Assembly (NCBI RefSeq): GCF_001194135.2
Contig: NC_068987.1
Coordinates: 3,148,531 to 3,184,116 of the forward strand
Length of the DNA stretch: 35,586 nt
Reading direction: 5' to 3'
Source of the DNA: Octopus bimaculoides
Taxonomy: Eukaryota
The translations under genes and the position numbers were made by a program. Within the stretch, counting starts at the first letter, position 1. Each line of letters begins with the position of its first letter. This document shows positions 4,003 through 35,454 of the stretch, one piece after another. The notes beneath the pieces were generated by a model that saw nothing but the letters and a program-made list of their open reading frames with translations, had not been told where the DNA came from and ran no database searches.

Positions 4003-4386
4003 ATGCCGTCAAACAGAGTAAAGTTTTCATTGACCAAACCAGCATTATTGTATTCCATGACCAGCATCAAGCCCTGGCTACCAACATTTAAATCCTTGTT
4101 GCTTGGACCCCTCCAACCACTTTTGAACGGCCAATTGGTCAAAATTCTACTCCTGCTGGTTATTGTCCAAATTTCTACCTGTTTGCGTGTCTGTTTGACA
4201 CTCAAAGAAATCAGTGATTCACAGAACTGGGATACATTTTTTGAAACATATTCCTTGCCCAGAGAGGAGTGTGAAAATTTGTGTGTGAGACGTTCTGCAT
4301 GTCATTCATTCTCGTACGATTCTGAAGATAACCGCTGCAAATTATCGTCAAAGAACCCAACCGCAGATTATGAAAACATAACTATT
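4003..4386 (+). CDS. Gene 1 exon 1: hydrophobic leader plus PAN/Apple domain
   Basis: The ORF encodes LVKILLLLVIVQISTC, then ECENLC..RSACHSFSY..EDNRCKLS, which is the PAN Cys pattern CxxxC-x-CxSFxY-x-CxL. A perfect GTAAGT donor at 4387 is phase 0 and matches the next exon. The ORF otherwise runs to a stop at 4426-4428. The true start codon is uncertain. Confidence 0.75.
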
Positions 4387-4584
4387 GTAAGTGGTGATTT
4401 TGTTTATACATCTATTTCAAATTGTTAATTTCTTTCTAATTATTCAATTTCTTTGTTTTTATTGTTCTATTATTATTTTGATATTTTTTTTTATGTTACT
4501 ATTCTGTCTCGCAAATACAAATTAAGCAAAAATGCAAGCAGACTTAGTGAACAGAGATGTTTGTATACATACATCATTGTCATC

Positions 4585-6691: not shown

Positions 6692-7176
6692 ATAACCCTT
6701 TCGTTGCTGCATTTATTTTGAGATGCTCTGTATTTCTTTCAATTACTTTAAATATTGGGTTGGTGCATAATTATTGCGGCTTTTTTTTTTTCAACAAATT
6801 TTATTCAACAAATGCAATAACAATATTTAATAAAACCATCTTTAAATGACGGTCTGACCATCTGCCAAGCAAATGGGAAGCAGTAATTGCAGTAGATGGT
6901 GAATATGCTCCAGAATAATCATTTAAAGATGTTTTTGTTACATGTTGTTATTGTTTTTGTTGAATATGAGTTATTGAAAAAAGCCACAATAATTATGCAC
7001 CAGCCCAATATAACAAAAAATTTAGTAAAATAACTTAGTTATCATTCAGCTAGTGTTAGGAACATAAATTGTGACTAAGGTTTGGCGGAAAATTTTAATT
7101 CAGAACTTAAGAAAACAAGACATTTGTACTACAAAGCCAGAGGCAGTTTCAGCCAGGCTGGTAATAAAAGGGTTAA
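6692..7176 (+). mobile_element. piggyBac-like MITE (CCCTTT...AAAGGG ends, TTAA-type target), interrupted by a mariner MITE
   Basis: Ends are ataa-CCCTTTCG ... AAAAGGG-ttaa. Uninterrupted homologues lie at 16853-17092 (+) and 33602-33822 (-). Confidence 0.8.
6755..7008 (+). mobile_element. Tc1/mariner-derived MITE with ~90-bp TIRs and TA target-site duplication
   Basis: TA|ttgggttggtgcataattattg ... caataattatgcaccagcccaa|TA. The centre encodes HLPSKWEAVIAVDGEY, resembling the mariner C-terminal WxxVIxxxGEY motif. An empty site is visible at 16915. Confidence 0.85.
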
Positions 7177-7599
7177 ATTGATTCGCTTCCATTTATTTGA
7201 TTCCTCTGACTGAAAGACATAGACATGGGCGCTTGTTGAAGTACAGGGGTGTAAGTCTGGCCGTGTGATTAACCACTTCTCTTCCGGCGACAGGGTTCTT
7301 TATCTTGCTGCCACACGGTTTCTTCTGCCATTGTCACTGGTCAAGTGATACATTGTGAACAAAGCTGTTTGTGTTGCTGATCCCTAGATTTAATCCATCA
7401 CTCTGCTTGCTGCCACTATCTTGACCTTGTATACTTTTTGCCATTACCACTTCTTTCCATGGATTTGAACCAGGTCTTCAATCTGAATGTTACTGACCAA
7501 TATCTACATTCAATGCTGTCTTGGTGATTGTATGCGTGTATGTATGTATGTATGTATGTATGTATGTATGTATGTATGTATGTATGTATGTATGCATGT

Positions 7600-7890
7600 T
7601 TGTTTGTAGTGTGTGTATGTGTATGCATGTCTCTTTTATATTTTAATTACTATAAATCTTCCACTGAGGAGGGAGCCGGTTTCGAACAAAGATACAAGGC
7701 TCTATCTTTGGGATGTAGTTAACGGGCAAATTCACATTTGGAACTTGAGAAAAGTCTTGCATATTCTTCCTGTTCCACTCACAGATTGCACTTGCAATGT
7801 ATGAATCATCCGATCGATTTCTCTTTCTGAAAATCCCAGTTTATCCAGATTCTCCTTTAAGCATTTACTAACAAAACCTAGTGCTCCAAT
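7600..7890 (-). mobile_element. R4/Dong-like RLE retrotransposon 3' fragment (subfamily B)
   Basis: The minus strand at 7890-7732 encodes IGALGFVSKCLKENLDKLGFSEREIDRMIHTLQVQSVSGTGRICKTFLKFQM*. A 3' UTR follows, then (TACA)n at about 7530-7600. Confidence 0.8.
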
Positions 7891-8430
7891 ATATGTATGT
7901 ATGTATGTGTGTATATATGTATGTATGTATGTGTGCAGATTTGTATGTTTTATGTATGTATTCTCATATATATAGTTACATATCTAGACATGCTCATATA
8001 TATTTAAATAAGATACTTCTGTAAAGTTTTACAGATTTTTACAGTTCAAATGATTGGTTGGATCTGTAGTCTTCAAATTAGCTTTCTCCTTTCTGGTTTT
8101 GAGAAGCCTAATTTCTCAAGACTGGTATTTAGGCAGTATGTTACATATCCTAGGGCCCCAATAATTACAGGTATAAACCTGAACTTGTAATCTGTGTAAA
8201 GTAAGTGTAGATTGCTCAATAGTTCAGCATAGGTGTTCTCTTTTTCACTGATCTTCAGTTTTATGCTAACATCCACTGGGCAACTAATTTCCACAACTGT
8301 GCACAGTTTCTCTTCTCTATCCCAAATCACTATGTCAGGTCTGTTGTGCTTACATTTTATTGAGGTCTTCACTGGGACATTCCACCAGGATTCCTTTTCA
8401 TTATGAGTAGCTATGGCTTCTACCATATTA
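7891..8430 (-). mobile_element. R4/Dong-like RLE retrotransposon 3' fragment (subfamily A) with restriction-like endonuclease motif
   Basis: ORF 8073-8426 encodes HNRPDIVIWDREEKLCTVVEISCP...KENTY...PVIIGALG, the PD-(D/E) and KxxxY RLE motifs. A 3' UTR and (CATA)n follow. Confidence 0.85.
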
Positions 8431-8810: not shown

Positions 8811-8874
8811 GAGTCAGGCCATACCTTTGTGTATATGTTTGCAAGGGTGTGTTTACGTAGCATATATTCTTTTT

Positions 8875-9260
8875 CTTTTATTTGTTTCAGTCATTTCACT
8901 GCGGCCATGCTGGAGCACCACCCTTAGTCAAACAAATCGATCCCAAGATTTATTCTTTGTAAGCCTAGTATTTAGTCTATCCGTCTCTTTTGCCAAACCG
9001 CTAAGTTATGGGGACGTAAAGACACCAACATCGGTTGTCAAGCGATGGCGGGGGGACAAACACAGACACAAAGACATATATATATATATATATAGATATA
9101 CGACGGGCTTCTTTCAGTTTCCATCTACCAAATCCACTCCCAAGGCTTTGGTTGGCTCAAGGCTATTGTAGAAGACACTTGCCCAAGGTGCTACACAGTG
9201 GGACTGAACCCGAGACCATGTGGTTGGTAAGCAAGTTATTTACCACACAGCCACTCCTGT
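8875..9260 (-). mobile_element. tRNA-derived SINE family C with internal microsatellite
   Basis: The head gagtggctgtgtggtaa...gggttcagtcccactg lies on the minus strand, with body gtccccataacttagcggtt...ctccagcatggccgcagt. Copies are at 11535-12045, 15275-15540, 17465-17700 and 24925-25245 (+), and at 22185-22545 and 28190-28355 (-). Confidence 0.8.
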
Positions 9261-9404
9261 ATACGAACATGAATGAGTGTGGTTTGTATGGAGATGTCCA
9301 TGCTTGGACATTTCATGACTGAACTTGATCCTTCTTTATTGACAAAGATCAATGTTCCTCACAGTAAATAACGCAAGCATGAGAAAGAAATCAATGACAA
9401 TGAT

Positions 9405-11236: not shown

Positions 11237-11327
11237 ATAACAAGCTCACCTTGTATTTATCGCCCTTGTGCTGCAGACGAAATGTGTGTAAACGCAAACA
11301 GGTCCGGTCATTTTTGTTTCCCATTGG
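11237..11327 (+). CDS. Gene 1 exon 2: 4-Cys EGF-like linker
   Basis: The acceptor is ctactttctccatatcttcacag and the donor is G|gtaagt. The 91-nt exon goes from phase 0 to phase 1 and encodes ITSSPCIYRPCAADEMCVNANRSGHFCFPL. It bridges the phase-0 PAN donor to the phase-1 CCP acceptor. It is not in the ORF track. Confidence 0.85.
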
Positions 11328-11750: not shown

Positions 11751-11775
11751 NNNNNNNNNNTATATATATATATAT

Positions 11776-12497: not shown

Positions 12498-12674
12498 ATA
12501 TTGACTGTGGATACCCTTTGCAATATAGAAATATGCTCCATGATGTTCCTAGCACAAAATACTCGAATGAAGTTCAGTATTTCTGCAAAGTAGGCTATAG
12601 ATTTACAGAGGGAGAAAATACTTCAACATGTCTTTTAAGTGGAAAATGGTCTGCTGTGCCTGCAGAATGCCAAC
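12498..12674 (+). CDS. Gene 1 exon 3: Sushi/CCP domain 1
   Basis: tttttag|AT...C|gtaagt, 177 nt, phase 1-1. It encodes IDCGYP...VQYFCKVGYRF.G..TSTCLLSGKWSAVPAEC, the C-x-C-GY-C-W-C Sushi consensus. Confidence 0.9.
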
Positions 12675-13860: not shown

Positions 13861-14011
13861 ATTTAGAAGGCCTCCACAACAACAACAAGAAGATTTTATT
13901 TAACAATTTGGGACAAAATGATAAAGAATGATGCAATAAAAAAACAACTGAAAGCACATTGTGATCACTGGTGTATGACAACGTCTTTTAGTTCTGTTGA
14001 GACACTGATAA

Positions 14012-14012
<1 letters not shown>

Positions 14013-14042
<30 letters not shown>

Positions 14043-14200
14043 TGTATGTATGTATGTATGCATGCATGCATGTATGTATGTATGTATGTATGTATGTATG
14101 TATGTATGTATGTATGAATGTATGTATGTATGTATGTATGCATGCATGCATGCATGTATGTATGTATGTATGTATGTATGTATGCATGTATGTATGTATT
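14013..14200. repeat. (TATG)n microsatellite with interspersed CATG units
   Basis: Read directly. It is the source of the MYVC and HTYI ORFs. Confidence 0.95.
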
Positions 14201-14801: not shown

Positions 14802-15005
14802 AAATCGAATGTGGAACTCCTGCTGTTATACCAAATACTACTATGGTTGTTGATGGAGCGGCCATCGATCCAAGTGATGTACCTCACACTTACCTAAGTC
14901 AGGTGACATATCGCTGTCTTGAAGATTATGTCAAAATAAATGGATCTGTAACATCCACATGTCAGCTAGATTCTCATTGGGCAGCTGCCACTATCCAGTG
15001 TCTTT
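14802..15005 (+). CDS. Gene 1 exon 4: Sushi/CCP domain 2
   Basis: cttaaattag|AA...T|gtaagt, 204 nt, phase 1-1. It encodes IECGTP...VTYRCLEDY..NG..TSTCQLDSHW....QC. Confidence 0.9.
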
Positions 15006-15695
15006 GTAAGTACAACTATATTCTTTTTTTCACAGGTTTCGATCATTGAAGTTCGGCCATGCTGGGGCATGACCTGCAATAGTTACTTTCATGTAACTCC
15101 AGGGATTCCTTTATTGACCAGTTCATACTTGGAGCAAAAAGAAGCAATTGGCAAAGTTTATTTTTTTTGTAATTCAAAAAGTAAAGTTTTCATCCATGTT
15201 AATGCTTTAAAATTTAATTTTACATATTCAAAATTACTTAAAAGAAAGTTTACATTAAAGGAGTAATCAAGCATGGTTGTGTGGTAAGAAGCTTGCTTCC
15301 CAAGTATTTGGTCATGGGTTCAGTCTCACTGTGTGACACCTTGGGCAAATATCTTCTACTATAGCTTCAAGCTGACCAAAGCCTTGTCAGTGGATTTGGG
15401 AGATGGAAACTGAAAGAAGCCCATTTTAGATATATGTCTGTGTGTGTGCTAGTGTTTGTCCCTCACCATCACTCAACAAACAATGGTAGTGTATTTTCAT
15501 GCCCGTAACTTAGCAGTTGAATAAGGACCAATACTTGGAAAAAAGGTTCATCATCATCATCATCGTTTAACGTCCGCTTTCCATGCTAGTATGGGTTGGA
15601 CGATTTGACTGAGGACTGGTGAAACCGTTCATTCGACTGGAATTCTTCAAGGCTGTGCCCCAGCTTAGCTGCAGTCTAATGACTGACACAATTAA

Positions 15696-15746
15696 AAGAG
15701 AGCACCTAATTAAAAGAGAGCACCTAATTAAAAGAGAGCACCTAAA
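15696..15746. repeat. 18-bp tandem repeat (aattaaaagagagcacct, 3 copies)
   Basis: Read directly. Confidence 0.85.
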
Positions 15747-15939
15747 TTTTTTGTTAGAATAAAACATTGATTCATTTAAAAAATTAAAAGCCAGTAACAT
15801 TTTTCCTGCTTTCATTCACCTCCAGGATGGCAAAAGTGTCCATTAGCTCAGTTTTCTCTCTACTTTCTCAAACTTTGCAACAAGAAGCTTTTGTAGATAA
15901 GAAGAAAAGAGAAACCAAAGATTGAAATGCAAATCAAAA

Positions 15940-16800
15940 CAAAAATGGGCAACGAGGAATGTCATCATTATTTTGACTCCACGTCTTATGAACTGTAGGG
16001 GTGAATGACTGGATGTACCATTCTGAAGAAATTTTTCTGTTTCCCATGTCTGTTATTTTGTCAGCATAAGAATACGTGGTCAACTCCTGGCTACTGGGAT
16101 TTGCATAATTTGATTTTAGTTTTGACAAAGCAATAAAATCTTAGAACCATCTAAATTCTGTAATTGCTCTGAAAACCTGTAGGTGACAACAAATTGATAC
16201 AGCGATTGATCACTGGAAAGTAGCTTCAATTCAGTTCCATTTGAGATCAGTTGAGAAAAATCTTGATATATTGAAGAGGTTAATTCACTGTATTGAAATT
16301 TTGTGCTGTGAAGAATTATAATTTGGAGGACATGATGAAACTGAAGAATCAAACAATAAAAGTTATTTTCTGTTTATATGTGAAGTTGTAGTGGAAGATT
16401 ACTTTTAGATTTTGTGAAGAAAAATGCCAACAGACCATTTTCTGAACTTTCAAGTGATATTCAAAAAAACAGCATTTGTTGCTGTTATTTTTGATAAGAC
16501 TATGGCCCTTCTGAAGAAATCTCCATTGTCACATGTTTTGAAATTTGTTGATGAGAAAAAAATGGCCTCAAGAAAGGTTTTCGGATACGTCAATGTCAGT
16601 AAAGACAGAAAAACTGCATCACTAACAGAAGTTTGAAAATCTATTAATGAATTCAGTTATGGCCAAAAGTTCATCACACAAACTTATGATGAAACGAGCA
16701 TGATGGCTAGGTATTTGAAGAGAGCACAAGCAAAAATAAAGGAGATTTTTCATGTGAATACCATATTCGTACATTGCTAAGCACATTCACTTAATTTGGT
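15940..16800 (+). mobile_element. hAT transposase relic (ZMYM1-like, with TTF-type zinc finger)
   Basis: Disrupted + strand frames give DWM...FCFPCLLF...WSTPGYWDLHN, then AFVAVIFD.T...LSHVLKFV, then QTYDETSMMA...IFVHC*AHSLNLV, matching the hAT CxxHxLNL motif. Confidence 0.75.
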
Positions 16801-16852
16801 ACAAAGAGAAGAGAGATTAATTTGATCTTCATTTCCATCAATAAAGACCTTA

Positions 16853-17092
16853 TTAACTGTTTCGTTACTGTATTTATTTTGAGATGCTCTGGGTTTCTTT
16901 CAATTAATTATAAATATAACAAAGAATTTAGTAAAATAACTTAGTTATCATTCAGCTAGTGTTAGGAACATAAATTGTGACGAAGGTTTGGAGGAAGATT
17001 TTAATTCAGAACTTATGAAAACAAGACATTTGTACTACAGAGCCAGAGCCGGTTTCAGCCGGTTTCAGCCGGGTTGGTAACGAAAGGGTTAA
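16853..17092 (+). mobile_element. piggyBac-like MITE, uninterrupted copy with TTAA at both ends
   Basis: ttaa-ctgtttcgttac ... gtaacgaaaggg-ttaa, homologous to 6692-7176. Confidence 0.8.
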
Positions 17093-17743
17093 GAAGATGA
17101 AAGTAGAGCATGGTGCAGATATATTTTATAACAAAGTGTTTGATGGATTTGCCAAAAAGAAACAAAGAATTGAACTGATTCATAAATAAATTTTAAACAG
17201 CTCATTATTTGTAGGTTCTATTATTTTCTCAGATTTCTCTTGTAACCAATAATGGTCATCATGGCAGGCCAGTCACCAGGGTATTGTTAATGAAGGAACA
17301 TCAGATCCAGTGGAAAGGGGTATCAAGCCTGCCGCGTGGCCTCTTTGTAGAAGAGCACATTAAAATTAGTTCATATCACATTCACAGATAGAGGGGCAAC
17401 AAATAATTTTTGGTGAGTAGGAGAGTAAAGCTCTATTGGCCTGCATTATGGACCCTTTACCACTGATGTGTGCATGTGTGTTTCTGTCTATGTTCCCCAC
17501 CACTGCTTGACAACCAGTCTTGATGAATTTATGCCACCATAATTTAGCCTTTTGCCCAAAGAGACAAATAAAATAAATACCAGGTTTAAAAAAAAAAGAG
17601 GAAATAAGACCTGAGGTCAATTTGATTGATTAAAAGTTCTTCAAGATGATGCCCCAGCATGGCCACAGTCTAATGACTAAAGCAAGCAAACAATGAAAGA
17701 TAAATGGTAAAATTAATAGAGACATTTTTTCCCTTAAAATTAG

Positions 17744-17947
17744 ATGTCAAATGTGCCGATCCTCCCAGATTACCGGACACTACATTGTCCTTGAATGGAG
17801 AAAGCGTGGCACCATCAGAGGTACCTGGCAAGTTTAACACTAGGGTGACATACAACTGTAGTGAATATAATGTTTATAGAAGTGGATCTACTAGTTCTGT
17901 GTGTCAGTTAAATTCAACATGGTCAAATGTCTCCATACAGTGTCTCT
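17744..17947 (+). CDS. Gene 1 exon 5: Sushi/CCP domain 3
   Basis: aaaattag|AT...T|gtaagt, 204 nt, phase 1-1. It encodes VKCADPP...VTYNCSEY..Y.SG..SVCQLNSTWS....QC. Confidence 0.9.
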
Positions 17948-18150
17948 GTAAGTACAACATCATTTCTTTCTCATTTTGATCACTGAACTGTGACAATGAT
18001 GCTGCATCAAGTTCAGGTGTTATTCCATTCGCTTATAACAGTTCCAATACATACATCAGTCATTCTCGTTTGGACGATGCCTAATTCTCAAAGACATAAA
18101 CACAACTGAGACATAGATACACAAACGCACAAGCACCATACATTCATACG

Positions 18151-18510
18151 TCAGGTTTGTACCTGTAATTATTGGGGTCCTGGGATATGTAACACACTGC
18201 CTAAAACCAATCTGGAGAAATTAGTCTTCTCAAAACCAGAAAGGAGAAAGCTAATTCAAAGACTAAAGATCTAAAGCCATCACTGGAACTGTAAAAATAT
18301 GTAAAACTTTCCAGAAGTTTAACATTTAAATATATATGAGTATGTCTAGATATGTGACTATATGCATGAGAATACATACTTACAAAAATACCCAGTTGTT
18401 GGTGTTGAATTTCCAATGAAGGAGCCTTGGATCCAGGTTAGAAACCAGCTCTTTCACTATTGGCAAGAAATCTCGAAATGGAACTGAAGAATGACTACAC
18501 ATATATGAGA
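18151..18510 (+). mobile_element. R4/Dong-like RLE 3' fragment (subfamily A)
   Basis: Homologous to the reverse complement of 7940-8190 (RFVPVIIG.LGYVTHCL...), followed by 3' UTR. Confidence 0.8.
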
Positions 18511-18738
18511 ATGTACATACAAACAAATATGCACATATATTTTATATATGTGTATAGATGTGTGGTGAAGAAGTTCTCTTAGCATCCACTTGGTTTCATG
18601 TTCAGTTATTTTGCATGATACTTTGGGGAAGTATCTTCTGTTATCATTTTCGGCCAACCAATGCCTTGTAAGTGAATTTGAAAGACAGAAACTGCCTGGA
18701 ATTCCCTCATATATATACATACATACATATATATATAT

Positions 18739-18979
18739 AAAAATTTAAGGAATGGAGAAAACGCATACTTTATTCCTACATATGTTTCAAAGGATTACAA
18801 CCTGTGTGATCCATAGGGATCTGTGATATTAAAATTGTAACCTTCTCATCAGGGAAAGCATGGGAATCATCTCAAACGTAAGACATTATGACCAAGTATA
18901 CATAGGTTGTAATCCTTTGAAACATGTAGGAATAAAGTATGCAATTATAACATACGTTTTCTCCATTCCTTAAATTTTT
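18739..18979. mobile_element. Foldback-type MITE with ~65-bp terminal inverted repeats in a TA-rich site
   Basis: aaaaatttaaggaatggagaaaacg-catactttattcctacat-atgtttcaaaggattacaacct is mirrored on the right, with one short insertion. Confidence 0.8.
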
Positions 18980-19137
18980 AAATATACTCAAATACCCAAA
19001 ATTTCAAGGAGTTCCTGCCTTAAAAACAGGAACAACACCAAAGTTATTTTGTGTTCTTTGCTACATTGGTTTCTATTAACCCATTTATTCTATCCGAAGA
19101 ATTATTATTCATTAAGATAGAAGAAATACATATAATT

Positions 19138-19182
<45 letters not shown>

Positions 19183-19184
<2 letters not shown>

Positions 19185-19480
19185 CATGAGATGGTATCAA
19201 AGAGTTCTTTGACTAGTTATGCTTGACAAAATATAACTTATTTAACATCAACCCCTTCAAAATAGTCACTTTGTGCAGCAATACATTGGTCCCAGCATTC
19301 CTGTTGCTTTTTGAATCCAGCCTGGAAGTCATTTTCCATGAGTCAAGGATCTTCTGTGATTCGCTCTGGATCTCAACAACGGTGTTAAAACGGCAAGCTT
19401 TGAGCTGCATTTTCATGTTGGGGAGTGCTCCCCCACTGTGCCATATCCTTGCCAACCAGCAAACACACAAGGCCACATGC
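19183..19480 (-). mobile_element. Mariner transposase C-terminal relic with terminal repeat abutting (TA)n
   Basis: The minus strand gives LPNMKMQLKACRFNTVVEIQSESQKIL and, after a frameshift, DFQAGF..QECWDQCIAAQSDYFEG, the mariner WxxCIxxxGDYFEG motif. Confidence 0.8.
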
Positions 19481-19836
19481 ATTAAGTGTATCTAATCGAT
19501 GAAGAGGGTCATCTATATTGGAGAAGAAGGGAATTTAAAGGCAGGTGAGAATATTGTGACCTCCATTAGCTAGTCACATCATTCATGTAGACATGCTTCA
19601 TGTGACAGAGCATGCGGTCTGCTGGCGTTAGATAGTTGACTTTATAATCCAGCAATGACAGGAGCCTACATCAGTATGGTTAAGTGGATAAAATATCGAC
19701 CATTCCTTGAACATATCATGGGTCTTTTACTATAGAAATTAGCTTCCATATTTTTTATTGATATTTGCTTTTACTCATCCTGTTGGTATATTGAATTGTT
19801 ATGTGAAATTAATTGTTACTTTCTTCCTAAAATTAG

Positions 19837-20040
19837 ATGTCAAGTGTGGTCGTCCTCCCAAGATAACTGATGCTGAATTTCAAGTTAATGGAAAAAGCAC
19901 AAGTAGGACAGATGTACCTGACAAATATAACAGTAGAGTGACTTACAAGTGTAAAGATGGTTTTAACTATGCTGATGGACCTCAGACTTCTGAGTGTCGG
20001 TTAGATTCAAAATGGTCTAAAGTCATCATGGTGTGTTCCA
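19837..20040 (+). CDS. Gene 1 exon 6: Sushi/CCP domain 4
   Basis: aaaattag|AT...A|gtaagt, 204 nt, phase 1-1. It encodes VKCGRPP...VTYKCKDGFNY.DG..TSECRLDSKWS....VC. Confidence 0.9.
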
Positions 20041-20241
20041 GTAAGTACAACATCATTTCTTTCTCATTTTGATCACTGAACTGTGACAATGATGCTGCAT
20101 AAAGTTCAGGTGTTATTTCATTCGCTTATAACAGTTCCATTACATACATCAGTCATTCTCGTTTGGACGACACTTAATTATCAAAGATATAAACACAACA
20201 GATACATACATACATACACACACATACATACATACATAAAA

Positions 20242-20278
<37 letters not shown>

Positions 20279-20291
20279 TGCATACATACAT

Positions 20292-20760
20292 ACAGTTGTG
20301 GAAATTAGCGACCCAGCAGATGTTAACATAAAGCTGAAAAAGTAAAAAAGAGAACAGCTACACTGAACTATTGAGAAATCTGCAGTTATTCTATCCAGAT
20401 TATAAGCTCAGGTTTGTACCTGTAACTATTGGGACACTGGGATATGTAACACACTGCCTAAATACCAAGCTTGAGAAATTAGGCTTCTCAAAACCAGAAA
20501 AGAGAAAGCTGATTCGAAGACTACAGATTCAATCCATCACTGGAACTGTAAAAATCTGAGCATGTCTAGATATGTGACTATATGCATGAGGATACATACA
20601 TAAAACATACAAATCTGCACATACATACATACATACATACTTACAAAAATGCCCTGTTGTTGCTGTTAAAACTCCAATAAAGGAACCTTGAATCAAGGTT
20701 AGAAACCAGTTCTTTCTCTATTGGCAAAAAATCTTGAAATAAACATGAACAATGACATAA
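20292..20760 (+). mobile_element. R4/Dong-like RLE 3' fragment (subfamily A)
   Basis: VVEIS.P.DVN...LRNLQLFYPDYKLRFVPVTIGTLGYVTHCLNTKLEKLGFSKPE, followed by a 3' UTR containing (CATA)n. Confidence 0.8.
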
Positions 20761-22000: not shown

Positions 22001-22993
22001 CGAATGTCACGGAGGATTTGGATACTTTCCTGTTGTATGGATGTAGATACCAGCATGTATGTGTTCACCACTGACCACTATTTGACTTGCTTGGACCAAA
22101 TGACAACAGCATGCAACATTGAGGAGAAAAATACAGGTTTTCCTTCAGAAGAAAAGTCACGAGTCAACTTCTACCATGTATGCTTTTATGCTTTTACTCG
22201 ATCCAGTCATTTCACTGTGGCCATGCTGGAGCAGTGCCTTTAGTTGAAAAAATCGACCCCAGGACTTATTCTTTGTAAGCCCAGTACTTGTTCTATCAGT
22301 CTCTTTTGCTGAACTGCTAAGTTACAGGGACATGAACACACCAACATTGGTTGTCAAGTGATGGTGGGGGGACAAACACAGACACGCAAATACATACATA
22401 CATGCATGTTTCCATCACCAAATCCACTCACAAGGCTTTGGTCAGTGCAAGGCTATAGTAGAAGACACTTGCTCAAGGTACCATGCAGTGGGACTGAACC
22501 TGGAATCATGTGGCTGGAAAGCAAGCTTCTTACTACACAGCCACTCCTGCATCTGTTGATTATTTGTTCGATATATTTAAGAAGCATTAGTACAGAACGT
22601 ATTGTTCATATGTTCTTTTCTACTCTAGGCACAACGCCCTAAATTTTGGGGGACAGGGCCAGTCGATTAGATGAACCTCAATATGCAACTGGTACTTATT
22701 TTACAAATCCTGAAAGGATGAAAGTCAAAGTCGACCTTGGTGGAATTTGAACTCAGAATGTAAAGACAGATGAAATACCGCTAAGCATTTCGCCCAACAT
22801 GCTAACGTTTCTGTTAGCTCGCCGCCTTGGTATTGATTATATAGTATATTGATTATATAATATATATAATCAATATATTATATTGATTATATATTAATAT
22901 ACTGTGTTTAAAATTTTATCTGTTTCTACAAGATAATAATAACATTGAAGTAATTTAGTGTGTTTAAATTTGTCTTATAAATTGTTTCCACAG

Positions 22994-23007
22994 GAACTGA
23001 TGGATAG
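22994..23007 (+). CDS. Gene 1 alternative candidate terminal exon (RTDG*)
   Basis: The acceptor is ttgtttccacag. Joining in phase 1 gives a 4-aa tail and TAG. Confidence 0.25.
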
Positions 23008-23588
23008 ATTTTGGAAATTTTTGGAAACATCACATTTGTCTGTGCTCACTGCTGATTATTATTTGACTTACAGGGCTCATAATGAATATTATTCCAAATT
23101 GACAACAGCATGCAGCATTGAGGGGGAAAATACAATTTCCCACCAGAAGAAAAGTCAAGGATGAAAACCAAGTACAACATGACTATTTTGACCGTTTATC
23201 TATTATTACCTATTGTTGATTCTGTTGACCATTATCACTTCCACTGCAATAAATGCTTATAAATTTAGTCACTTCTCTAAACCTTAAAAATATTCATTTA
23301 CTTGTTTCACTCATTGCGTTTATGCCATACTGGGGCACCACCATCAAGACGTCTTATCTATCCTGTCAATCCAAGTATATATTTCAGTTTGGCACTGATT
23401 TTATCATTTGCTGTTTACTGAATTGCTAAGTTTCACTTTCACATAAGGAGCATGACTCAAACACTGGTAATCATAAGCACAAAGATATAAGTGCACATAC
23501 GAGAAGAATAAAATGTACCAGCTCTGTTTTTGAGTATTTAGATCACAAAATGAAATATCGTCCTTGAACCAATCTATTTTATTTTCAG

Positions 23589-23602: not shown

Positions 23603-25391
23603 AATTCTTTATACTCACATAATATCGGTGTATGACGAGAAGAATCAAATGTACCAGTTCTGTTTCTGAGTATTCTTCATACTTATCTTATGAACCTCAG
23701 TGTCACTTAAAGTGGACGTGCCAAGACGATTAAAATGACAGCTAGAAACAAAACATTAAAATCCATTTAGTCACACATTCTGCTGTTGCTACCAATGTAC
23801 CACTGCTGAGTGAGCCAACATGCTTACGTGCTTGCCTTCTCTATAATTTGGCTTTTTGCTTATTGTTTAAAACCCTATAACAATAATAGATTTTTAAAAC
23901 AATTAGATAAACCATAACTTTTCAATTTTATTTGTAAATGCTGAACAGCAGTTTGTTAATTCTTAACTGGTTATCTTGTTTTTATATGTATTTCACCAGA
24001 GCACCTTTCAATAAATAATAAATAATATCGTGTGAATTTTGCTGGTTTGTGTTTTCATTGTAAATTTTAATGTTAAGAGATTTTGTCAAAGTTCCCACAG
24101 GGCTACAATATGAAACTCCTTAATTTCAACAGAAGCACGAAGACTACAACAGCAATGATGACAATATCTCAGACCAAACACAGTAAGCATGTATGTATGT
24201 ATATATGTAGGTAGGTGGGTGGGTAGGTAGGTAGGTAAGATGGATAGATAGATAGAGAGAGAAAGAGGGATAGAGAGGGGGATTTGAATAATAAAGTCAA
24301 TTGATATTTCAAATGCATTTATGTATGTTTCTAAAGGTTACATAACATGTACAGGGGGTTCCATTAAAAGAACTGTATTGTATGTAGAGTTAGCCCATTA
24401 ACATACTGTAAAGCTAGGAATGTAGTCTATAGAATAAGATGTACAGAGGGACAGTGCAGAAACAAAACAATGACATGCATAGGAGAGACAGCATGTAGTA
24501 TAGAAGTGCGGGTTAATGAGCATTGGAGAGAACTCAAGGAAGAGAAGAGCTTGTCAGTACTATACCAACACACTGAGTGGGAACATAGGGGCTCACTCAA
24601 CAACAGCCATAAAGAGAAAGATTGCAGGCCCGAATATTGTAAACAGTACCTTATTCTTATTTCTTTACTGCCCACAAGGGGCTACACACAGAGGAGACAA
24701 AGAAGGACAGACAAACGGATTAAGTCGATTATATCAACCCCAGTGTATAACTGGTACTTATTTAATTGACCCCGAAAGGATGAAAGGCAAAGTCGATCTC
24801 GGCAGAATTTGAACTCAGAACAAAGCAGCAGATGAAATACTGCTAATACATGCCTACTACCAGAGGTAGAGTAAATATGCTTTATTTCAATAAAGTGTGT
24901 GTGTGTGTGTATTTTTTTTTTTCAGGCGTGGGTGTGTGGTAAGAAGTTTGCTTCTCAACCACATCGCTCCGGGTTCAGTCTCACTGTGTGGCACATTGAG
25001 CAAGTGTCTTCTTCCATAGCCTCGAGCCGACTAAAGCCTTGTGAATGTATTTGGTAGACGGAAACTGAAAGAATCTCCCACCGTGTCTCTGTGTTTGTCC
25101 CCTACTACCGCTTGACAACTGGTGTTGTTTTATTTACGTCCCCGTAATCTAGTAGTTCGGTAAAAGAAACTGACAAAATAAATACCAGGTTTTTAAAAAA
25201 AGAGGTATTGGAGTCGACTCATTCGAGAAAAAAATCCTCCAAGGCAAAAATGAATAACCCTGTAATGGCCAAACACCCCGTCCAATACGCTACAGAGGCC
25301 GATTTCCCAGTCTTATGACCCTTTGTGTGTGTGTGTGTGTGTGTGTGTGTATAATCAATAATGTGGGTAGCTTATTAGCAATTTAAAAACC

Positions 25392-26754: not shown

Positions 26755-29310
26755 CGGCAATCATGTTTCATGTATCGATTAAAATAGCCAAATCCGAAGA
26801 ACTAGTCATGGTGTGTCTCGATTTAAATTATTAAGCAAAGTTGGTAGATTCGGATAAGTTTGTTATGAAGAGATTCCTCGCTTTTCAGACATGGATTTTC
26901 CTTCGTCTGGGAGAAACAAAATGTTTTAGCTTTGGGATTTTTCTGATTAAATAGCGATTCTTCGATTCTTTACAAATTGATAAAAATCAGAAGAATCTAA
27001 TATGGTTAAATTAATAATAAAATGAGAGAATTTATTTAAGATTTATTTTGTCAAACGGATAAACAGAGGACCTCGTATTTATTTATTTATAAGTAAGAAT
27101 ATATTTAATCACATCGGGTTTGATATATTTATGGTTGTTAGCTTATCGACTTCAGACGAATGCCAAATAAAATCAGCTTTAATAATGTTTGGACTAAAAA
27201 AAACTCGCGAATTAAATGTAAATATTGCAAATCATTTCGTTCGATGTTTCGGTTATATTCGAAAATGTCACAAAAGTTCCATTGTCCGGGAAGTGGTAAA
27301 CAAAGATACGGACATTCACAAATATAGAGTCCTGTTGGTGGTGCTCAGACCTGATTGAGCAGGCTTGTGATCAAAGGCAATCAAGCCGTGACCATCTCAT
27401 CGTTTTAGAAACCTCATTAGTATCGATTACATTACTCTAATGTGTTCTTTCCCCATTTAAGACGGCAGGGTGAAATCGAAAGATATTTGGCTGCTATTTC
27501 CAGCAGGTCGAACGACAACGAGGAGACTACATTGTTTGTGCGTAGATATCAATAATGATCGAAATGCCTCTATGTACAGAACAACTATTCCAGCTTTGTG
27601 GAATTTCAACCGCCATTCTGTAAGCCAAATAACTTCTAAGCAGCACTCCCACAGACAAATACCTCACATGTGTTGTCTACTTCAACGCCATCTCCTCCAC
27701 ACCTAGATTACTTGTTCCTTGCCAAACTCCCTTGTTCAACCCTAGCTCAGCCCTGACATGCCGTTAGAACATTCCAGCTGTGATTATTCCGGTTTGTACT
27801 TTTGGTTTTTACTTTTTTTTCTGTCCCCCACCCCACCTGGACGGGTATATCTAAGATCACGCATTCCTGTGTCCTTTTGTTAAAAAAAACAAACAAAAAA
27901 GATGGTGAGCTGCTATTTCTAGAATATCAAGACGCCACACAGAGGCCTCGGTTTGTTTCCTCAGCTAGTAGGGAAATGAGATTTGTGTGCCGTTCACTTA
28001 CTTACTGACAGTCATTCCTTATCGTGATGTATTTGGTTACTAACTTGTACTAACACCAATTCTGTTCTTCCCACAAACGAAACGGTTCGACCAGAACAGC
28101 CACAGATAACTCTGCTCAGAGGGGAAAAAATGTACTTTTCCCAAATTAATTTGGGATAACTTTTGGAGGCACTCTTTTATTCTATTATTCCTTTCAGTCA
28201 TTTTACTGCAGCCATGCTGGAGCACCGCCTTTTAGTCGAAGAAATCAACTCCAGGACTTATTCTTTATAAGCCTGGTACTTATTCTGTAGATCGCTTTTG
28301 CCGAACCCCTAAGTTATGGGGACGTAAACAGACCAACATCGGTTGTCAAGCAATGGTGGAAGGACAAACTCAGGCATAAACATATACATATATGTGTGTG
28401 TGTATATGTATATATATGTGTGTGTGTGTGTGTGTGTATGTATATATGTATGTGTGTGTGTATGTATATATGTATATATATATATGTGTGTGTGTGTATG
28501 TGTACAAATGGTGCTTTTTCTGTGCCACCGGCACGGGACCAGTCAGGTGGCACTGGCATCATATATTTTTATAATTAAGATCTAAGCAGTTAATATACGA
28601 ATGCAAAAGAGATATTCGAATAACCGTAAACCTACTTTTGGGCCACCCTGTATAGTTTCTATTAGTGGCTGTGTGGTAAGAAGTTTGCGTCCCAACCACA
28701 TGGTTCTGGGTTCAGTCCCACTGCGTGGACCTTGGGCAAGTATTTCTACTAAAGCTTCAGTAAAAAGTAAAAGATATATGACAAAATCTTGCCAAACAAA
28801 TACCAAACCATAAACAGCCTTCTTATTTTCATCCTTGTTCTGTTGATTCTCATTCTTATGTAAAGCAAAACCAAATGCTTGACATCCTTGGAAGTCACTT
28901 TACCATTCTCTAGTAATGATGATGATTTCAACAGTCTGATGATCAGAGTATGGGGACATAGTTGACAATCTTTTGCAGGTTTTAAATTATAAAAATGCTT
29001 TAAAATTCCTGCTTAATGTAGGCATTCAACCTTCTAGAAACGGCAAACAAGATTTCCCTCAATGTCAAATCCTACCATAGTAAAAGATGGGAAACCAGCA
29101 CCTGATTTTCATACATTAGATCTGAAAAATAGACCAGATGGGCAAGGTTGGACCATCTTTGATTAGAGCTCTGCTTGATCAGGGCTGACATGAGGTGGTG
29201 TGGGCTAAACAACAATGACAAAAACAACAACCATTTCTAAACTATTCTGAATTTACCTGATTTTACCTTTTCTGTCTTTTTCTTCCAGAGGCACGTTTGA
29301 AACTAAACTT

Positions 29311-30560: not shown

Positions 30561-30659
30561 AATATTGTTAGGAATAGTATAAAAAATTGTTAAAATATTT
30601 TGTGCAATTTTGTTTTTCTAAACTGTTATGTTACACATACAAATATATACATACATACA

Positions 30660-30709
<50 letters not shown>

Positions 30710-30883
30710 CACACTCTTACCTTAATCTGATGGGTTATTCTGTACTTTTGTAGAGTGCAAATTTATTAATCTTAGACAAGAATGTTGTTGACAGTGACTT
30801 CAAAGTTTTGGCCAGCTAAGCCATTATATTTATAACATCTTCACACTCACAGTAATTGCTTTCTTCTTTCTCTCCTCATCTAG

Positions 30884-31695: not shown

Positions 31696-32076
31696 ATATT
31701 TTTCATACTGATCTCCATTTGGTTTGTAATCTTAAAGAATTTTACACCTGTATATAATGACCTTAGCAGACCTAATTACAATGATGCCTCATAACTTTAG
31801 AAGATCTCTAATTTGTCTAATCATATTTTTCAAAATTGTTTATTTTGATAATAGTGTTTAATGCACAAAATTAACAAATTAAAATTTTATCTCTTAGGCC
31901 ATTCGATTATTTAAAACAGTGGAAAAGTAGCAGATTGTTGCATGATTAAAATAAATGTACAAAATTGTAAGATTTATGAATTCAACAAGTAAATATTATT
32001 GTTTTGTATTTAACAAAGAAATACAAAATTCTCCAAAAATTTGATTGTTTTTCCTTTTACTTTATCTAATTAACAG

Positions 32077-33031
32077 GTACAAATCATTGAAAATTTTAAT
32101 TTCCTGCAGCAATAAAAGTGAACTCGCAGCTTTTGTGAATGATGACTACGAAATCAGTAGTGTTGCCCTTTCCTGCCGGGATCATCTCATCCTTCTCATA
32201 CTCCACAGACAACAAGGAATTGTAAACCAATTTGCATTTCCTATTGTAGACATACAACAAAAGAAGACTCTTGGCATCATGTTATCTCCAAAAGAAAATA
32301 TGACTATTGTTAATGGTGACATCACACCTGACTGCTCTCGTACGGCTATTCTTTTCTTCTCCTTTTCCGAAGTCAGTAAAACATCAAGCTATGATTTGTA
32401 TATATATTCTCATGAGACTTTCCAAGTCCTCAACATCATTACACTGAATCATGCTGTTCAACCATATGTTGCCTTTGACCCTCGTTTCAGGTGGTCTCGT
32501 ATTGCTGTAGCCAACTACGAGTGTCGAGCAACAGGCGTCTGTAACGAACTTGTCACTTATTCTTTATCTGAAATGGGAATTGTTGTACGCAGCAACTTGT
32601 GTCTCCCTGTTCTGTTTGGCAGCAGCCGTTTTCATCTCTCCTACAGCAAAGACGGAACTTTACTTATTGTTCAGAAACTCACTGACAACCGCTTTGGGGT
32701 CACAGCTTTCTCTGATATATATTTGTTTAACGCCGATACAATAACGTTACTTAAGTATTTAACATCATGTCTTCCTGGTTTAATAAGAATATGTCGTGTT
32801 AATTATCAACTCGCATTTTCCCGCTGTGGCAGCTACATGAGAGTGCTTGATCATAAACAGAGTTCCGATGAAGTTAGTATCCTTGTTTATCAGATGCCAC
32901 GAATCCTCAACTTACAAAGTCAGTGTCGAATAGTCATACTCCAACACCTTTCCAGAACTTGTGACATTGATATTCTACCCTTACCTTCTGTTCTCAGACA
33001 ATACCTTAAATTTCAGCCAATTTTTCGGTGA
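32077..33031 (+). CDS. Gene 2 terminal exon: beta-rich (propeller-like) body plus C-terminal SOCS box
   Basis: A 328-codon ORF with acceptor taacag|G (phase 2). The C-terminus LNLQSQCRIVILQHL..CDIDILPLPSVLRQYLKF contains a BC box (LxxxCxxxI) and a Cul5 box (LPLP..L..YL). The spliced model is 1200 nt (399 aa). Confidence 0.85.
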
Positions 33032-33178: not shown

Positions 33179-33601
33179 TCAAGCTAGCAAAATCATTAAC
33201 AAGACAGACAAGACACTTAGTGGTATTATCCCAACTCTTTACCTTCGGAGTTCTACTTCTAAGTTCTCGTCAAGTGCTGGAGTCGATGTAATCAATTTCC
33301 CTTTCCCCTCAGGATTGCTGGCCTTGTGCTGAAATTCGAAAGAATTATTAAGAATCATTCATGTGTTGGATAAAATGCTAAGTGGCATTTCTTCAAGTTC
33401 TTTACATTCTAGTTTCAAATCCTGCTGAGGTCAGCTTTGCTTTCTGTCCTTTTGGGGGTCAATGAAATAAGTACTTGTCAAGTACCGGGGATTAATGTAC
33501 GTGATCAGCCCCCCCCCCCACCACTGAGCTGGGGTAATTGTTGGCCCACCAGACAAAATGTTCAATGGCATTTCATCTACATTTTGAGGTCAACATTGCC
33601 T

Positions 33602-33822
33602 TTAACCCTTTCGATACCAACCTACCTGAAACTGCCTCTGGCTCTGTAGTACAAATGTCTTGTTTTCATAAGTTTTGAATTAAAATCTTCCACCAAACCC
33701 TAGTCACAATTTACGTTCTTAAAACACTAGCTGAATGATAACTAAGTTATTTTACTCAATTCTTTATTATATTTAAAATTAATTGAAAGAAACCCAGAGT
33801 ATCTCAAAAGAAATATGTTAAC
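33602..33822 (-). mobile_element. piggyBac-like MITE, inverted copy with one end eroded
   Basis: ttaa-CCCTTTCGATACC followed by the reverse complement of the 16853-17092 body. Confidence 0.75.
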
Positions 33823-35454
33823 AAAACAGTCTTTTGGGGTCAATGAAATTATTTCCAACTAAGACGGGTCAATATAATCGACTAAACCCCTTGCACAAAA
33901 TTTCAGGCCTTACACCTATAATAACAGAAAGGATTATTATTATTAAGTAAGGCTTGATAATAATGCTTAGCACCATTTCGTCCATCTCTACATTCTGAGT
34001 TGAAATTCAGCTGAGGTTGACTTTGTCTTTCATCCTTTCAGGGTTGATAAAAATAAGTACCAGTTGAATACTGGGGTTGATATAATCAAGTTATCACTGC
34101 CCCGAACTTACTAGCCTTATTGCCAAAATTTGAAATCATTATTATTATCATCATCATCATTATTATCATTAGTTTTGTCTTAACTTTCCTATCTCCAAGA
34201 CATGAAAAATTTCCCCTTATTTAAAATCTCACCTTTTCAAGATGGAACCTAGTCTTGACTTATTCATTTACAAACAACACTCAACTCTATTTTATTTATT
34301 GTTGATGGCCAGACTAAGCTGTTAGTTTTAAACACATTGAATTTAGCACATTGTATAAACTGGAGACTAAGAACATAACTGACATGAAATAGAATTTCAA
34401 AATTAGCTAAGTATCTTCGCTCATCTGCTAGATAGACTACTTTTTGGATTTAATCTCTTACATACTAAATGAATTGATAAAATGAAATCCAATCTTCATT
34501 ACTATGGAAAAGTAATAACGGGTGGGATTTGATCAACAAGAAGATGAAATCAAAAGAATGGCTGTATCTCTTTCCTGCTTCTAGTTTGTATCTTTCTCAT
34601 AATTCTTCCTTTAAGTATACGTTTCAGTCTAAACTTTATTGTACTTTATTTTATTTTATTCCAGTTGTTATTGTTTTTTGGTTCAATCTAGTCAAAAAGC
34701 TTTATTTTTGATTTCTTTCAATTTTTCCTGTTTTTTTTCTTTGTGCCAGAGAAAATATCACAGATAATAATATATTTTCAAGACTAAATAAAAAAAAAAA
34801 AAAAACACTTGTTATAAACGAAATAAATTTAATTCAAAACAAGACAAATTTTGAAATTTTGTTTACATCTTACAGGCAGCTTTCGACTGTTTCCACCCAA
34901 AGGACTATTTTTTTTAACAAAATATTTACATGTCATTATTTATAGCTTTATCTACTTGGAGTTCCACCGTTAAAAATTTTGAAATCTTTGTATTAATTGG
35001 TAAATTCTTGCTGATGTCTCAACGACCAGAATATTGGAAGATAGTGATGTAAGGAGAGATAACTCATCACATTTCTTACGTTTTATTATTTCAGCAAATG
35101 TTGCCATCTCAAGCGAACAAAATTTAAGGAGGGAGCGGGGAAATTTTCTTTATCCCTTTTTTTTGTTTTCTTGAAATGATTTCAGTTGTGTTGTTTTTGT
35201 TTCAAATTAGGAAACTGTAAAGATGACAGTGGATCTCCGTCGTTCGATGACGAAGATTCATTTCTTCAGCCAATTGAATTATCTCCTCCTCATTTAACGT
35301 GTTTGTAACCGAATACTGCTTGGACAAGTCCTACCCATAAAGCAATTAATTCTGAAACAGAATTAGCTCGTCACAGTGTGTTACAGGGTTCTACCCTTCG
35401 AATTAGGGATACAATTCACTCGACGAATATTTCACTAATTCCCTGAACCCGATT

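Follow-up and report, generated by a model that had tools for sequence, protein, structure and literature searches.

Gene organization and protein architecture

The window analysed here is a stretch of 35,586 nucleotides of Octopus bimaculoides DNA (contig NC_068987.1), and positions are given in its own numbering. It is AT-rich animal DNA (GC 0.28-0.45) and contains a complete gene, as seen when the protein was mapped back by tblastn, for a small protein with a PAN module and four Sushi (CCP) modules. Three tandem Sushi exons of this gene, CCP2 to CCP4, were compared with their counterparts in O. vulgaris and O. sinensis. We consider it probable that these exons of an Octopus-restricted protein are under diversifying selection and that they predate the split of the three species.

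The concatenated Sushi modules of the window are 100% identical to the O. bimaculoides proteins XP_014773591 (isoform X2, 425 aa) and XP_014773590 (isoform X1, 430 aa), for which the NCBI model carries the name 'sushi, von Willebrand factor type A, EGF and pentraxin domain-containing protein 1' (SVEP1). Identity with SVEP1 was rejected, and the label is regarded as a best-hit artefact because Pfam detects just PAN_1 and four Sushi stretches in the 425 residues. SVEP1 shares Sushi modules with the octopus protein, but it is ~3,500 aa long and contains ~30 CCPs together with vWA, EGF, HYR and pentraxin domains that Pfam does not find in the octopus protein. A search of the accessible literature found no paper naming the gene or the two accessions. 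The suggestion in the preliminary description of the locus that the protein could be undescribed is therefore right as far as these publications are concerned but overlooks the existing automatic NCBI gene model.

The protein begins with a hydrophobic N-terminal anchor or signal, followed by the PAN module, a Cys-rich linker and the four Sushi modules, all encoded on the plus strand. The coding part of exon 1 (4003-4386; residues 1-128), delimited by tblastn, the open reading frame (ORF) and a GT donor, encodes a conserved N-terminus, a hydrophobic stretch (residues 48-66) and the start of the PAN/Apple module, with PAN_1 detected by Pfam at residues 87-121. The hydropathy maximum of the protein falls on residues 48-66, which points to a signal anchor or an extended signal peptide. 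Exon 2 (11237-11327; phase 0 to 1) encodes the Cys-rich linker (ITSSPCIYRPCAADEMCVNANRSGHFCFPL). The CCP1 exon (12498-12674) is 177 nt long, in phase 1-1, and encodes a short Sushi module without a hairpin insert. It is followed by three exons of 204 nt each, also in phase 1-1, namely CCP2 (14802-15005; residues 219-285), CCP3 (17744-17947; residues 287-353) and CCP4 (19837-20040; residues 355-421), the last being the fastest-evolving module. By annotation, CCP2-4 are constitutive exons that are joined in series, each encoding one Sushi module. A regular-expression scan and tblastn identified no fifth Sushi exon in the window.

The terminal coding region (22994-23102) has two alternative acceptors 80 nt apart. 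Use of the acceptor at 22994 (22994-23007) gives the C-terminus ...RTDG* of isoform X2, and use of that at 23074 (23074-23102) gives ...RLIMNIIPN* of isoform X1. In O. vulgaris and O. sinensis the protein terminates in ...DDD.

Structure of the Sushi modules

The Sushi profile PF00084 matches four stretches of the annotated protein (Pfam; E=2.9e-24; score 85.7 bits, cut-off 20.7). Four Cys and one Trp, located between Cys3 and Cys4, are present in 12/12 modules of the three species, and 16/16 Cys and 4/4 Trp are invariant across them. Each of CCP2-4 comprises 67 full codons and CCP1 comprises 58. As noted in the preliminary description, the CCP2-4 exons share their length (204 nt), phase (1-1) and splice context ('aaattag' before and 'gtaagtacaac' after the exon), and CCP2-4, but not CCP1, contain a [VL]-[ND]-G-x7-V-P segment. 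In a MAFFT alignment of the modules, this segment is an insert of ~9 residues that CCP1 and most canonical modules lack, whereas HMMER pairwise alignments to CR1 and CR2 put the extra residues directly before N-G. Because the two methods disagree, the placement of the insert is uncertain.

An AlphaFold2 (AF2) model of CCP4 as a single module, built from an input alignment of 17 modules, reached a predicted local distance difference test score (pLDDT) of 94.3, and the whole protein with an alignment of four sequences reached only 30. The predicted fold of CCP4 is a beta-sandwich typical of CCP modules. Nearly all of its listed Foldseek matches in the PDB are CCP modules, with template modelling (TM) scores of 0.6-0.75, and its neighbours include CD55, IL-15Ra, CD46, C4BP and membrane attack complex components. 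The insert is predicted in this model to form a beta-hairpin, with one strand at 13-17, an N-G turn and a second strand at 20-22. By sequence, the nearest solved proteins are CR1 (E=9e-37), CR2, DAF, MCP, Crry, beta2-GPI and factor H.

N-glycosylation sequons, inspected by eye, differ between the species. CCP2 carries NTT and NGS in O. bimaculoides as against NTS, NAS and NGS in O. vulgaris, and CCP3 carries NCS, NST and NVS as against NIT and NVT, while CCP4 has zero sequons in both species.

Orthologues and age of the exon duplications

Apart from the O. vulgaris and O. sinensis orthologues, which are 69-73% identical to the O. bimaculoides protein, no close relative was found among 5.8 billion clustered proteins by word-index search and HMMER. 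The remaining matches are giant multi-CCP proteins or distant mollusc PAN+CCP proteins, and the sole non-octopus match of the word index is a frog 'ZP3 receptor-like' CCP protein. On these searches the gene encodes an Octopus-restricted small protein, its orthologues being found only in Octopus.

Collinearity with the window extends over ~30 kb in both O. vulgaris (locus L001) and O. sinensis (locus L002), and the CCP1-4 exons of these loci have the same lengths, phases and splice contexts. Informative sites in the CCP3/CCP4 exon quartet support orthology at 32 positions, grouping by species at 2 and a crossed arrangement at 1. Since CCP1-4 are shared by the three species and the sites stand 32:2 for orthology, the duplications are older than the species split, and the earlier view of CCP2-4 as recent exon duplicates does not hold. 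On the same sites, the exons have escaped homogenisation since the split, and exon conversion within the gene was ruled out as a source of codon identity (2 concerted against 32 orthology sites). Paralogue dS (synonymous divergence) of 0.45-0.8 is 2-4 times the orthologue dS, which suggests that the CCP3/CCP4 duplication is 2-4 times older than the species split.

Divergence of exons relative to introns

Nonsynonymous and synonymous divergence (dN and dS, with omega as their ratio) between the O. bimaculoides and O. vulgaris orthologues was computed by NG86. In the N-terminus (residues 1-60) dN is 0.066 and dS 0.106 (omega 0.62), and in the PAN part (residues 61-128) they are 0.154 and 0.502 (omega 0.31). 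The linker, of 29 codons, has a dN of 0.146 and a dS of 0.054 (omega 2.7). Among the Sushi modules, CCP1 gives dN 0.104, dS 0.075 and omega 1.39, CCP2 gives 0.135, 0.089 and 1.51, CCP3 gives 0.209, 0.280 and 0.75, and CCP4 gives 0.298, 0.154 and 1.9-2.1. For CCP2-4 together, dN is 0.212, dS 0.169 and omega 1.26. CCP4 also stands out between O. vulgaris (44653-44856 of its locus) and O. sinensis (64167-64370), whose loci are otherwise nearly identical in the gene: it has replacements at 7/67 residues (dN 0.069, dS 0.037), and CCP1-3 have 0-1.

As a neutral yardstick we used 13,241 BLAST-aligned intron sites of the same gene, taken from a collinear chain, which give a divergence of p=0.090 (K=0.096), with single introns ranging from 0.064 to 0.113. 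Replacements per nonsynonymous site amount to 0.185 in CCP2-4, which is 2.06 times the intron level (p=2e-10). The excess is largest in CCP4 (0.246, 2.7 times, p=8e-9), followed by CCP3 (0.183, 2.0 times, p=4e-4), and it is not significant in CCP2 (0.124, 1.4 times) or CCP1 (0.097, 1.1 times). In 100-nt bins, divergence peaks on the exons at 0.22-0.24 and lies at 0.04-0.13 in the flanks.

In the PAN-coding part of exon 1 (4183-4386), dS is very high at 0.50-0.60 relative to O. vulgaris and O. sinensis, with an omega of only 0.24-0.31, and 15.5/42 synonymous sites are changed against an intron p of 0.09 (p=5e-7). The first 75 codons of exon 1 are almost unchanged, while the bins at 4200-4399 show 16-23% divergence compared with 5-10% in neighbouring bins. 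The high dS of the PAN part might stem from local conversion by a paralogue not seen here, from a hotspot of mutation or from selection at synonymous sites.

Codon site models

Site models were fitted with a purpose-written GY94/F3x4 likelihood program, in which the one-ratio model M0 agrees with NG86 and with the maximum likelihood (ML) method of Biopython (1.44 as compared to 1.26-1.41). One data set was a nine-sequence tree of CCP2-4 from the three species, with 67 gap-free codons; the second consisted of the three orthologue trios with shared site classes, which leaves out the saturated deep branches.

M0 gives an omega of 0.92 for the nine-sequence tree. Twice the log-likelihood difference (2dlnL) between M1a and M2a is 21.46 (lnL -1109.16 vs -1098.43; p=2e-5), that between M7 and M8 is 21.4 and that between M8a and M8 is 21.1 (p=2e-6), with 24% of sites at omega 4.4 and 18% at omega ~0. 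For the orthologue trios, M0 gives an omega of 1.44 and the same three comparisons give 16.86 (p=2e-4), 16.8 and 16.9, with 27% of sites in a selected class of omega 5.3. Parametric bootstraps under M1a reached null maxima of 5.97 in 60 replicates, against 16.9 observed, and of 8.24 in 40 replicates, against 21.5. The comparison of M7 with M8, which had been proposed as a check, thus supports a site class with omega >1, and the bootstraps agree. A model in which each module position is independent ran to a degenerate optimum (13% of sites, omega 29) and was not relied on.

Exon codons 8, 15, 22, 31, 33, 45, 49 and 52 have a posterior >0.8. All of them are supported in the orthologue-only analysis except codon 52, which drops to 0.5-0.8, and codons 20, 54, 55 and 65 are added. 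Residue numbers are obtained from exon codon n as 218+n in CCP2, 286+n in CCP3 and 354+n in CCP4. Codons 15, 20 and 22 lie within the predicted hairpin of the CCP4 model, and the rest are scattered over the module.

Comparison of the paralogous exons

The hand counts in the preliminary description were exact: 28/67 residues are common to CCP3 and CCP4 of O. bimaculoides, and of the 27 conserved residues other than Trp/Met, 21 are encoded by the same codon. This codon identity is not accounted for by AT bias, as only 11.8 identical codons are expected from the gene's own codon usage if synonymous sites are saturated (P=1e-4). The accompanying suggestion that paralogue dN approaches or exceeds dS is borne out for one pair only. 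CCP3/CCP4 gives a ratio close to 1 (1.05 by NG86, 0.91 by LWL85 and 1.18 by ML; dN 0.49, dS 0.47), whereas the pairs with CCP2 fall at 0.1-0.7 and are near saturation (0.54-0.67 for CCP2/CCP3 and 0.12-0.58 for CCP2/CCP4). Within O. vulgaris and O. sinensis, the CCP3/CCP4 ratio ranges from 0.47 to 1.14. Taken alone, the CCP3/CCP4 ratio is compatible with neutrality near saturation. With dS between 0.5 and above 1 the comparison is close to saturation and its outcome varies with the method, and the paralogue ratio was therefore dropped as the chief test of selection. The proposed diversification under positive selection is upheld instead by the orthologues, the intron yardstick and the site-class tests.

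Gene conversion in the introns and retroelement copies

Identity between the CCP3 and CCP4 units of O. bimaculoides is 64% in the exons, 97% in the first 100 bases of the downstream intron and 85% in the next 96, and upstream of the exons similarity stops after ~37 nt. The downstream tracts (17948-18072 after CCP3 and 20041-20165 after CCP4, both on the plus strand) differ at 3/125 positions from +1 to +125, in contrast to 73/204 in the exons (Fisher p=2e-14). The CCP4 tract has 13/125 mismatches to its own O. vulgaris orthologue (relative-rate binomial p=0.0065), and the O. bimaculoides CCP3 tract has 15/125 to the O. vulgaris CCP4 tract. As the two O. bimaculoides tracts are closer to each other than to the orthologue, the transfer would have taken place after speciation. 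The best reading of these alignments is a recent non-allelic gene conversion, limited to the intron, in the O. bimaculoides lineage, of which the two tracts would be the arms. The shared donor context of CCP3 and CCP4, earlier taken as a sign of youth, is due to this post-speciation event.

In O. vulgaris and O. sinensis, most of the tract is missing behind CCP3. Their post-CCP3 intron lacks about 95-100 nt relative to O. bimaculoides (at 41692-41800 of the O. vulgaris and 60942-61045 of the O. sinensis locus), and the retroelement fragment that follows begins at +100 to +103 in these species as compared to +204 in O. bimaculoides. The length gap could reflect loss of sequence in that lineage or, alternatively, its acquisition by O. 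bimaculoides through conversion from the CCP4 unit. The shared tract has no match in Rfam and its folding is not unusual (z=+1.39). Its interpretation as a conserved element, a functional RNA or a Dscam-type selector was rejected on the grounds of its deletion in the relatives, its divergence at the intron rate and its ordinary fold.

Farther downstream, each intron contains a 5'-truncated retroelement 3' end on the plus strand, located at 18151-18495 after CCP3 and at 20292-20756 after CCP4, where the copy is ~116 nt longer at its 5' side. Self-BLAST and alignment relate 18151-18495 to 20408-20756 and, on the minus strand, to 7910-8300. The coding remnant of the fragments matches a minus-strand ORF at 8073-8426, a remnant of 117 aa (…IGALGYVTYCLNTSLEKLGFSKPERRKLI) with zero Pfam matches, and the recurring 3' end of this ORF looks like the tail of a non-long-terminal-repeat (non-LTR) retroelement. 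From the alignments, the fragment after CCP3 appears to have been duplicated together with the exon, and it is ~116 nt shorter than its counterpart in 3/3 species. In the retroelement part, paralogues differ at 18-25/178 positions and orthologues at 12-26/178, with informative sites at 3:1. Since the paralogues are no more divergent than the orthologues, either homogenisation of the CCP3/CCP4 introns has occurred repeatedly or the duplication precedes the species split by only a modest margin.

Evaluation of the diversifying-selection hypothesis

Several points weigh against diversifying selection on CCP2-4. Relative to dS, no exon or set of exons has an omega significantly above 1 (Fisher p 0.10-0.34). 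Three species are available and two of them are nearly identical, so that each module effectively offers one contrast. The shared-class models assume the same selective class at aligned positions of different modules. The codon code is purpose-written and not PAML, its checks being NG86, the ML method of Biopython and the bootstraps only, and an earlier nine-sequence bootstrap held an outlier (27.4) and a NaN value, both gone after numerical safeguards. BLAST-aligned intron columns may understate neutral divergence. Moreover, CCP3 and the PAN part have dS values (0.28 and 0.5, respectively) above the intron level, so a mutational component is possible. Finally, codons with 2-3 changes are over-represented, and multi-nucleotide mutation can mimic the signal. 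For this reason the excess was recounted with each changed codon or cluster of intron mismatches taken as one event, which gives 2.04 times the intron level for CCP2-4 (p=6e-8) and 2.6 times for CCP4; single-hit codons alone have an omega of 1.40.

Under relaxed constraint, the CCP modules would drift near neutrality in a dispensable, lineage-restricted gene and the omega values above 1 would be noise. This is in line with the overall omega of 1.25-1.3, which is not significantly above 1 against dS, with the M0 omega of 0.92 on the full tree and with the shortness of the genes and the small number of taxa. A population study of the two-spot octopus concluded that most genes with dN/dS >1 there reflect noise or relaxed constraint (PMC13174406), which also speaks for it. 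However, neutral evolution cannot exceed the neutral rate, and a replacement divergence twice that of introns (p about 1e-10; p=6e-8 when counted as events) would therefore exclude relaxed constraint as the cause. M1a, M7 and M8a are likewise rejected with the concurrence of the bootstraps, and the three species have all preserved the Cys and Trp residues, the reading frames, the exon lengths of 204 nt and the splice sites. We thus consider relaxed constraint unlikely. An excess of mutation in exons over introns, whether by multi-nucleotide mutation, ectopic conversion from diverged Sushi or PAN paralogues or another exon-targeted process, seems more doubtful still. It predicts that dN and dS are both raised without selection for change, as is the case for the synonymous differences (pS) in CCP3 (0.23 as compared to 0.09 in introns; p=0.005) and in the PAN part (0.37; p=5e-7), and it would also fit the surplus of codons with 2-3 differences and the adjacent intron mismatches, which are 1.5 times the expectation (162 vs 106). 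Yet in CCP1, CCP2 and CCP4 dS stays at 0.075-0.15, near the intron K, while dN rises to 0.30, and the excess survives in single-hit codons and in the event-based count. The search of 5.8 billion clustered proteins offers no close paralogue as a donor, and conversion between exons of the gene is excluded by the 32:2 sites. The high synonymous divergence of the PAN part and CCP3 and the multi-change codons would be compatible with a diversifying process directed at the exons of a surface-protein gene in a mollusc, in which the excess would be partly mutational and aimed at coding sequence. It is possible that such a process works by templated conversion from unannotated donor fragments or by a targeted mutator, and a mutator might act alongside homogenisation of the introns alone, by which the repeats would stay capable of recombining; the chances of such a process appear slim to us.

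The remaining two alternatives concern the relationship between the exons. The 97%-identical intron segment behind two exons could be read as a selector or docking RNA of Dscam-like, mutually exclusive exons, and the equal length and phase of CCP2-4 mean that any subset could be skipped in frame. Against this, the gene models, annotated independently in the three species, join CCP1-4 in series. The segment itself has mostly been lost behind CCP3 in O. vulgaris and O. sinensis, its divergence between species (13/125) is that of an ordinary intron, it folds unremarkably (z=+1.39) and it has zero Rfam matches. Tandem one-exon CCP modules are moreover the norm for the Sushi domain, and we find mutual exclusion highly improbable. 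A very young CCP3/CCP4 duplication, in which intron identity records the true age and the exons diverged explosively later, would agree with exons 64% identical beside 97% over the first 100 downstream nt (3/125 mismatches over 125 nt) and with the retroelement counts (18-25/178 for paralogues, 12-26/178 for orthologues; informative sites 3:1). But orthologues of both exons are clearly present in O. vulgaris and O. sinensis, the CCP3 tract of O. bimaculoides is nearer to the CCP4 tract than the latter is to its own orthologue, and paralogue dS (0.45-0.8) is 2-4 times orthologue dS, all of which make so recent an origin very unlikely.

Diversifying selection on CCP2-4 accordingly remains the explanation that we favour, and the claim of positive selection, based as it is on three species and on purpose-written codon models, is reasonably well supported. 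Tandem duplication produced the three 204-nt Sushi exons before O. bimaculoides separated from O. vulgaris and O. sinensis. Residues of the fold (four Cys, the Trp, the S-x-W-S motif, the V-T-Y-x-C strand and the Pro that follows Cys1) have since been held fixed, while about a quarter of the other positions, including some in and around the extra beta-hairpin of the Cys1-Cys2 region, would have been replaced repeatedly above the neutral rate. Selection would thus act on the module surfaces, most strongly in CCP4 and CCP3, and its driver may be an evolving binding partner such as a pathogen, a complement-like component or a gamete or self-recognition ligand. In a separate event, the recent non-allelic conversion in O. 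bimaculoides would have halted at the exon border, either because homology collapses there or because homogenised exons were selected against.

Comparison with known systems

Among solved structures, the best matches in sequence and fold are vertebrate regulators of complement activation (RCA) and related all-CCP receptors (CR1, CR2, CD55/DAF, CD46/MCP, C4BP and factor H), a group to which ZP3R/sp56 also belongs. The octopus gene resembles them in its tandem modules, each encoded by one phase 1-1 exon, but identity is only 20-28%. It departs from the vertebrate RCA proteins in its N-terminal PAN module, in having just four modules and in the predicted hairpin of ~9 extra residues in CCP2-4. 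The extracellular part of RCA proteins is made of CCP modules only, whereas here PAN_1 and the Cys-rich linker precede the CCPs. Several vertebrate RCA and all-CCP genes are well-known cases of positive selection, exerted by pathogens or linked to recognition between sperm and egg. In the abalone Haliotis rufescens, profile matches to XP_048255530 and XP_046376518 run from the PAN module into the CCP array (query residues 82-366 and 85-225), so the architecture is not unique to the octopus; these PAN+Sushi proteins of 621-721 aa are distantly related and not orthologous to the octopus protein.

Snake-venom phospholipase A2 (PLA2) isozymes and conotoxins are known for 'accelerated evolution', with exons diverging faster than introns, and genes of the major histocompatibility complex (MHC) for homogenised introns beside diverse exons. 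The octopus gene is like the former in that exon replacement divergence is 2-2.7 times that of introns, and like the latter in that a conversion-homogenised intron tract adjoins a diverse exon; it differs from both in belonging to another protein family and in being compared here from one haplotype per species. Diversified immune receptors of invertebrates include the Biomphalaria fibrinogen-related proteins (FREPs), arthropod Dscam and sea-urchin 185/333. Like these, the gene seems to encode an extracellular multi-domain protein, here of a mollusc, with its variability concentrated in particular exons. The variation seen here is ordinary germline divergence between species, and signs of somatic diversification, alternative exon choice or a multigene family were not found. 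A CCP-module protein with positive selection and with exons outpacing introns is thus of a type already known, while the gene itself is unstudied.

Other features of the window

A second gene probably lies downstream of the Sushi gene, where an intronless ORF of 328 aa on the plus strand (32045-33031) contains a SOCS box at residues 289-322 (Pfam, E=2e-6) and has zero Pfam matches outside it. The introns contain long (ATGT)n/(CATA)n and (CA)n microsatellites, which also flank the duplicated units (7525-7630, 7889-7961, 14010-14200, 20182-20300, 28380-28505 and 30632-30720). A 10-N assembly gap is located at 11751-11760 inside a (TA)n/(CA)n repeat. Dispersed short repeats of several families, 75-95% identical and in both orientations, are found in introns and flanks (7007-7177, 16856-17092 and 33601-33830; 8858-9262, 22172-22552, 28174-28394, 15274-15518 and 24923-25200) and look like elements of the short interspersed (SINE) type.

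Biological significance

To our knowledge, cephalopods are without adaptive immunity, and little has been learned about the molecules they use for recognition. We also know of only few cephalopod genes for which site-level positive selection has been documented. The locus is a compact candidate of this kind, in which the scaffold of the modules is fixed while their surfaces, above all those of CCP4 and the extra beta-hairpin, appear to change faster than neutral DNA. It also provides a clean, small case in which conversion seems to have homogenised an intron up to the splice site beside exons that stay diverse. Should the binding partner turn out to be a pathogen, a gamete ligand or a factor resembling complement, exon codons 8, 15, 20, 22, 31, 33, 45, 49, 52, 54, 55 and 65 would mark where to look for the contact.

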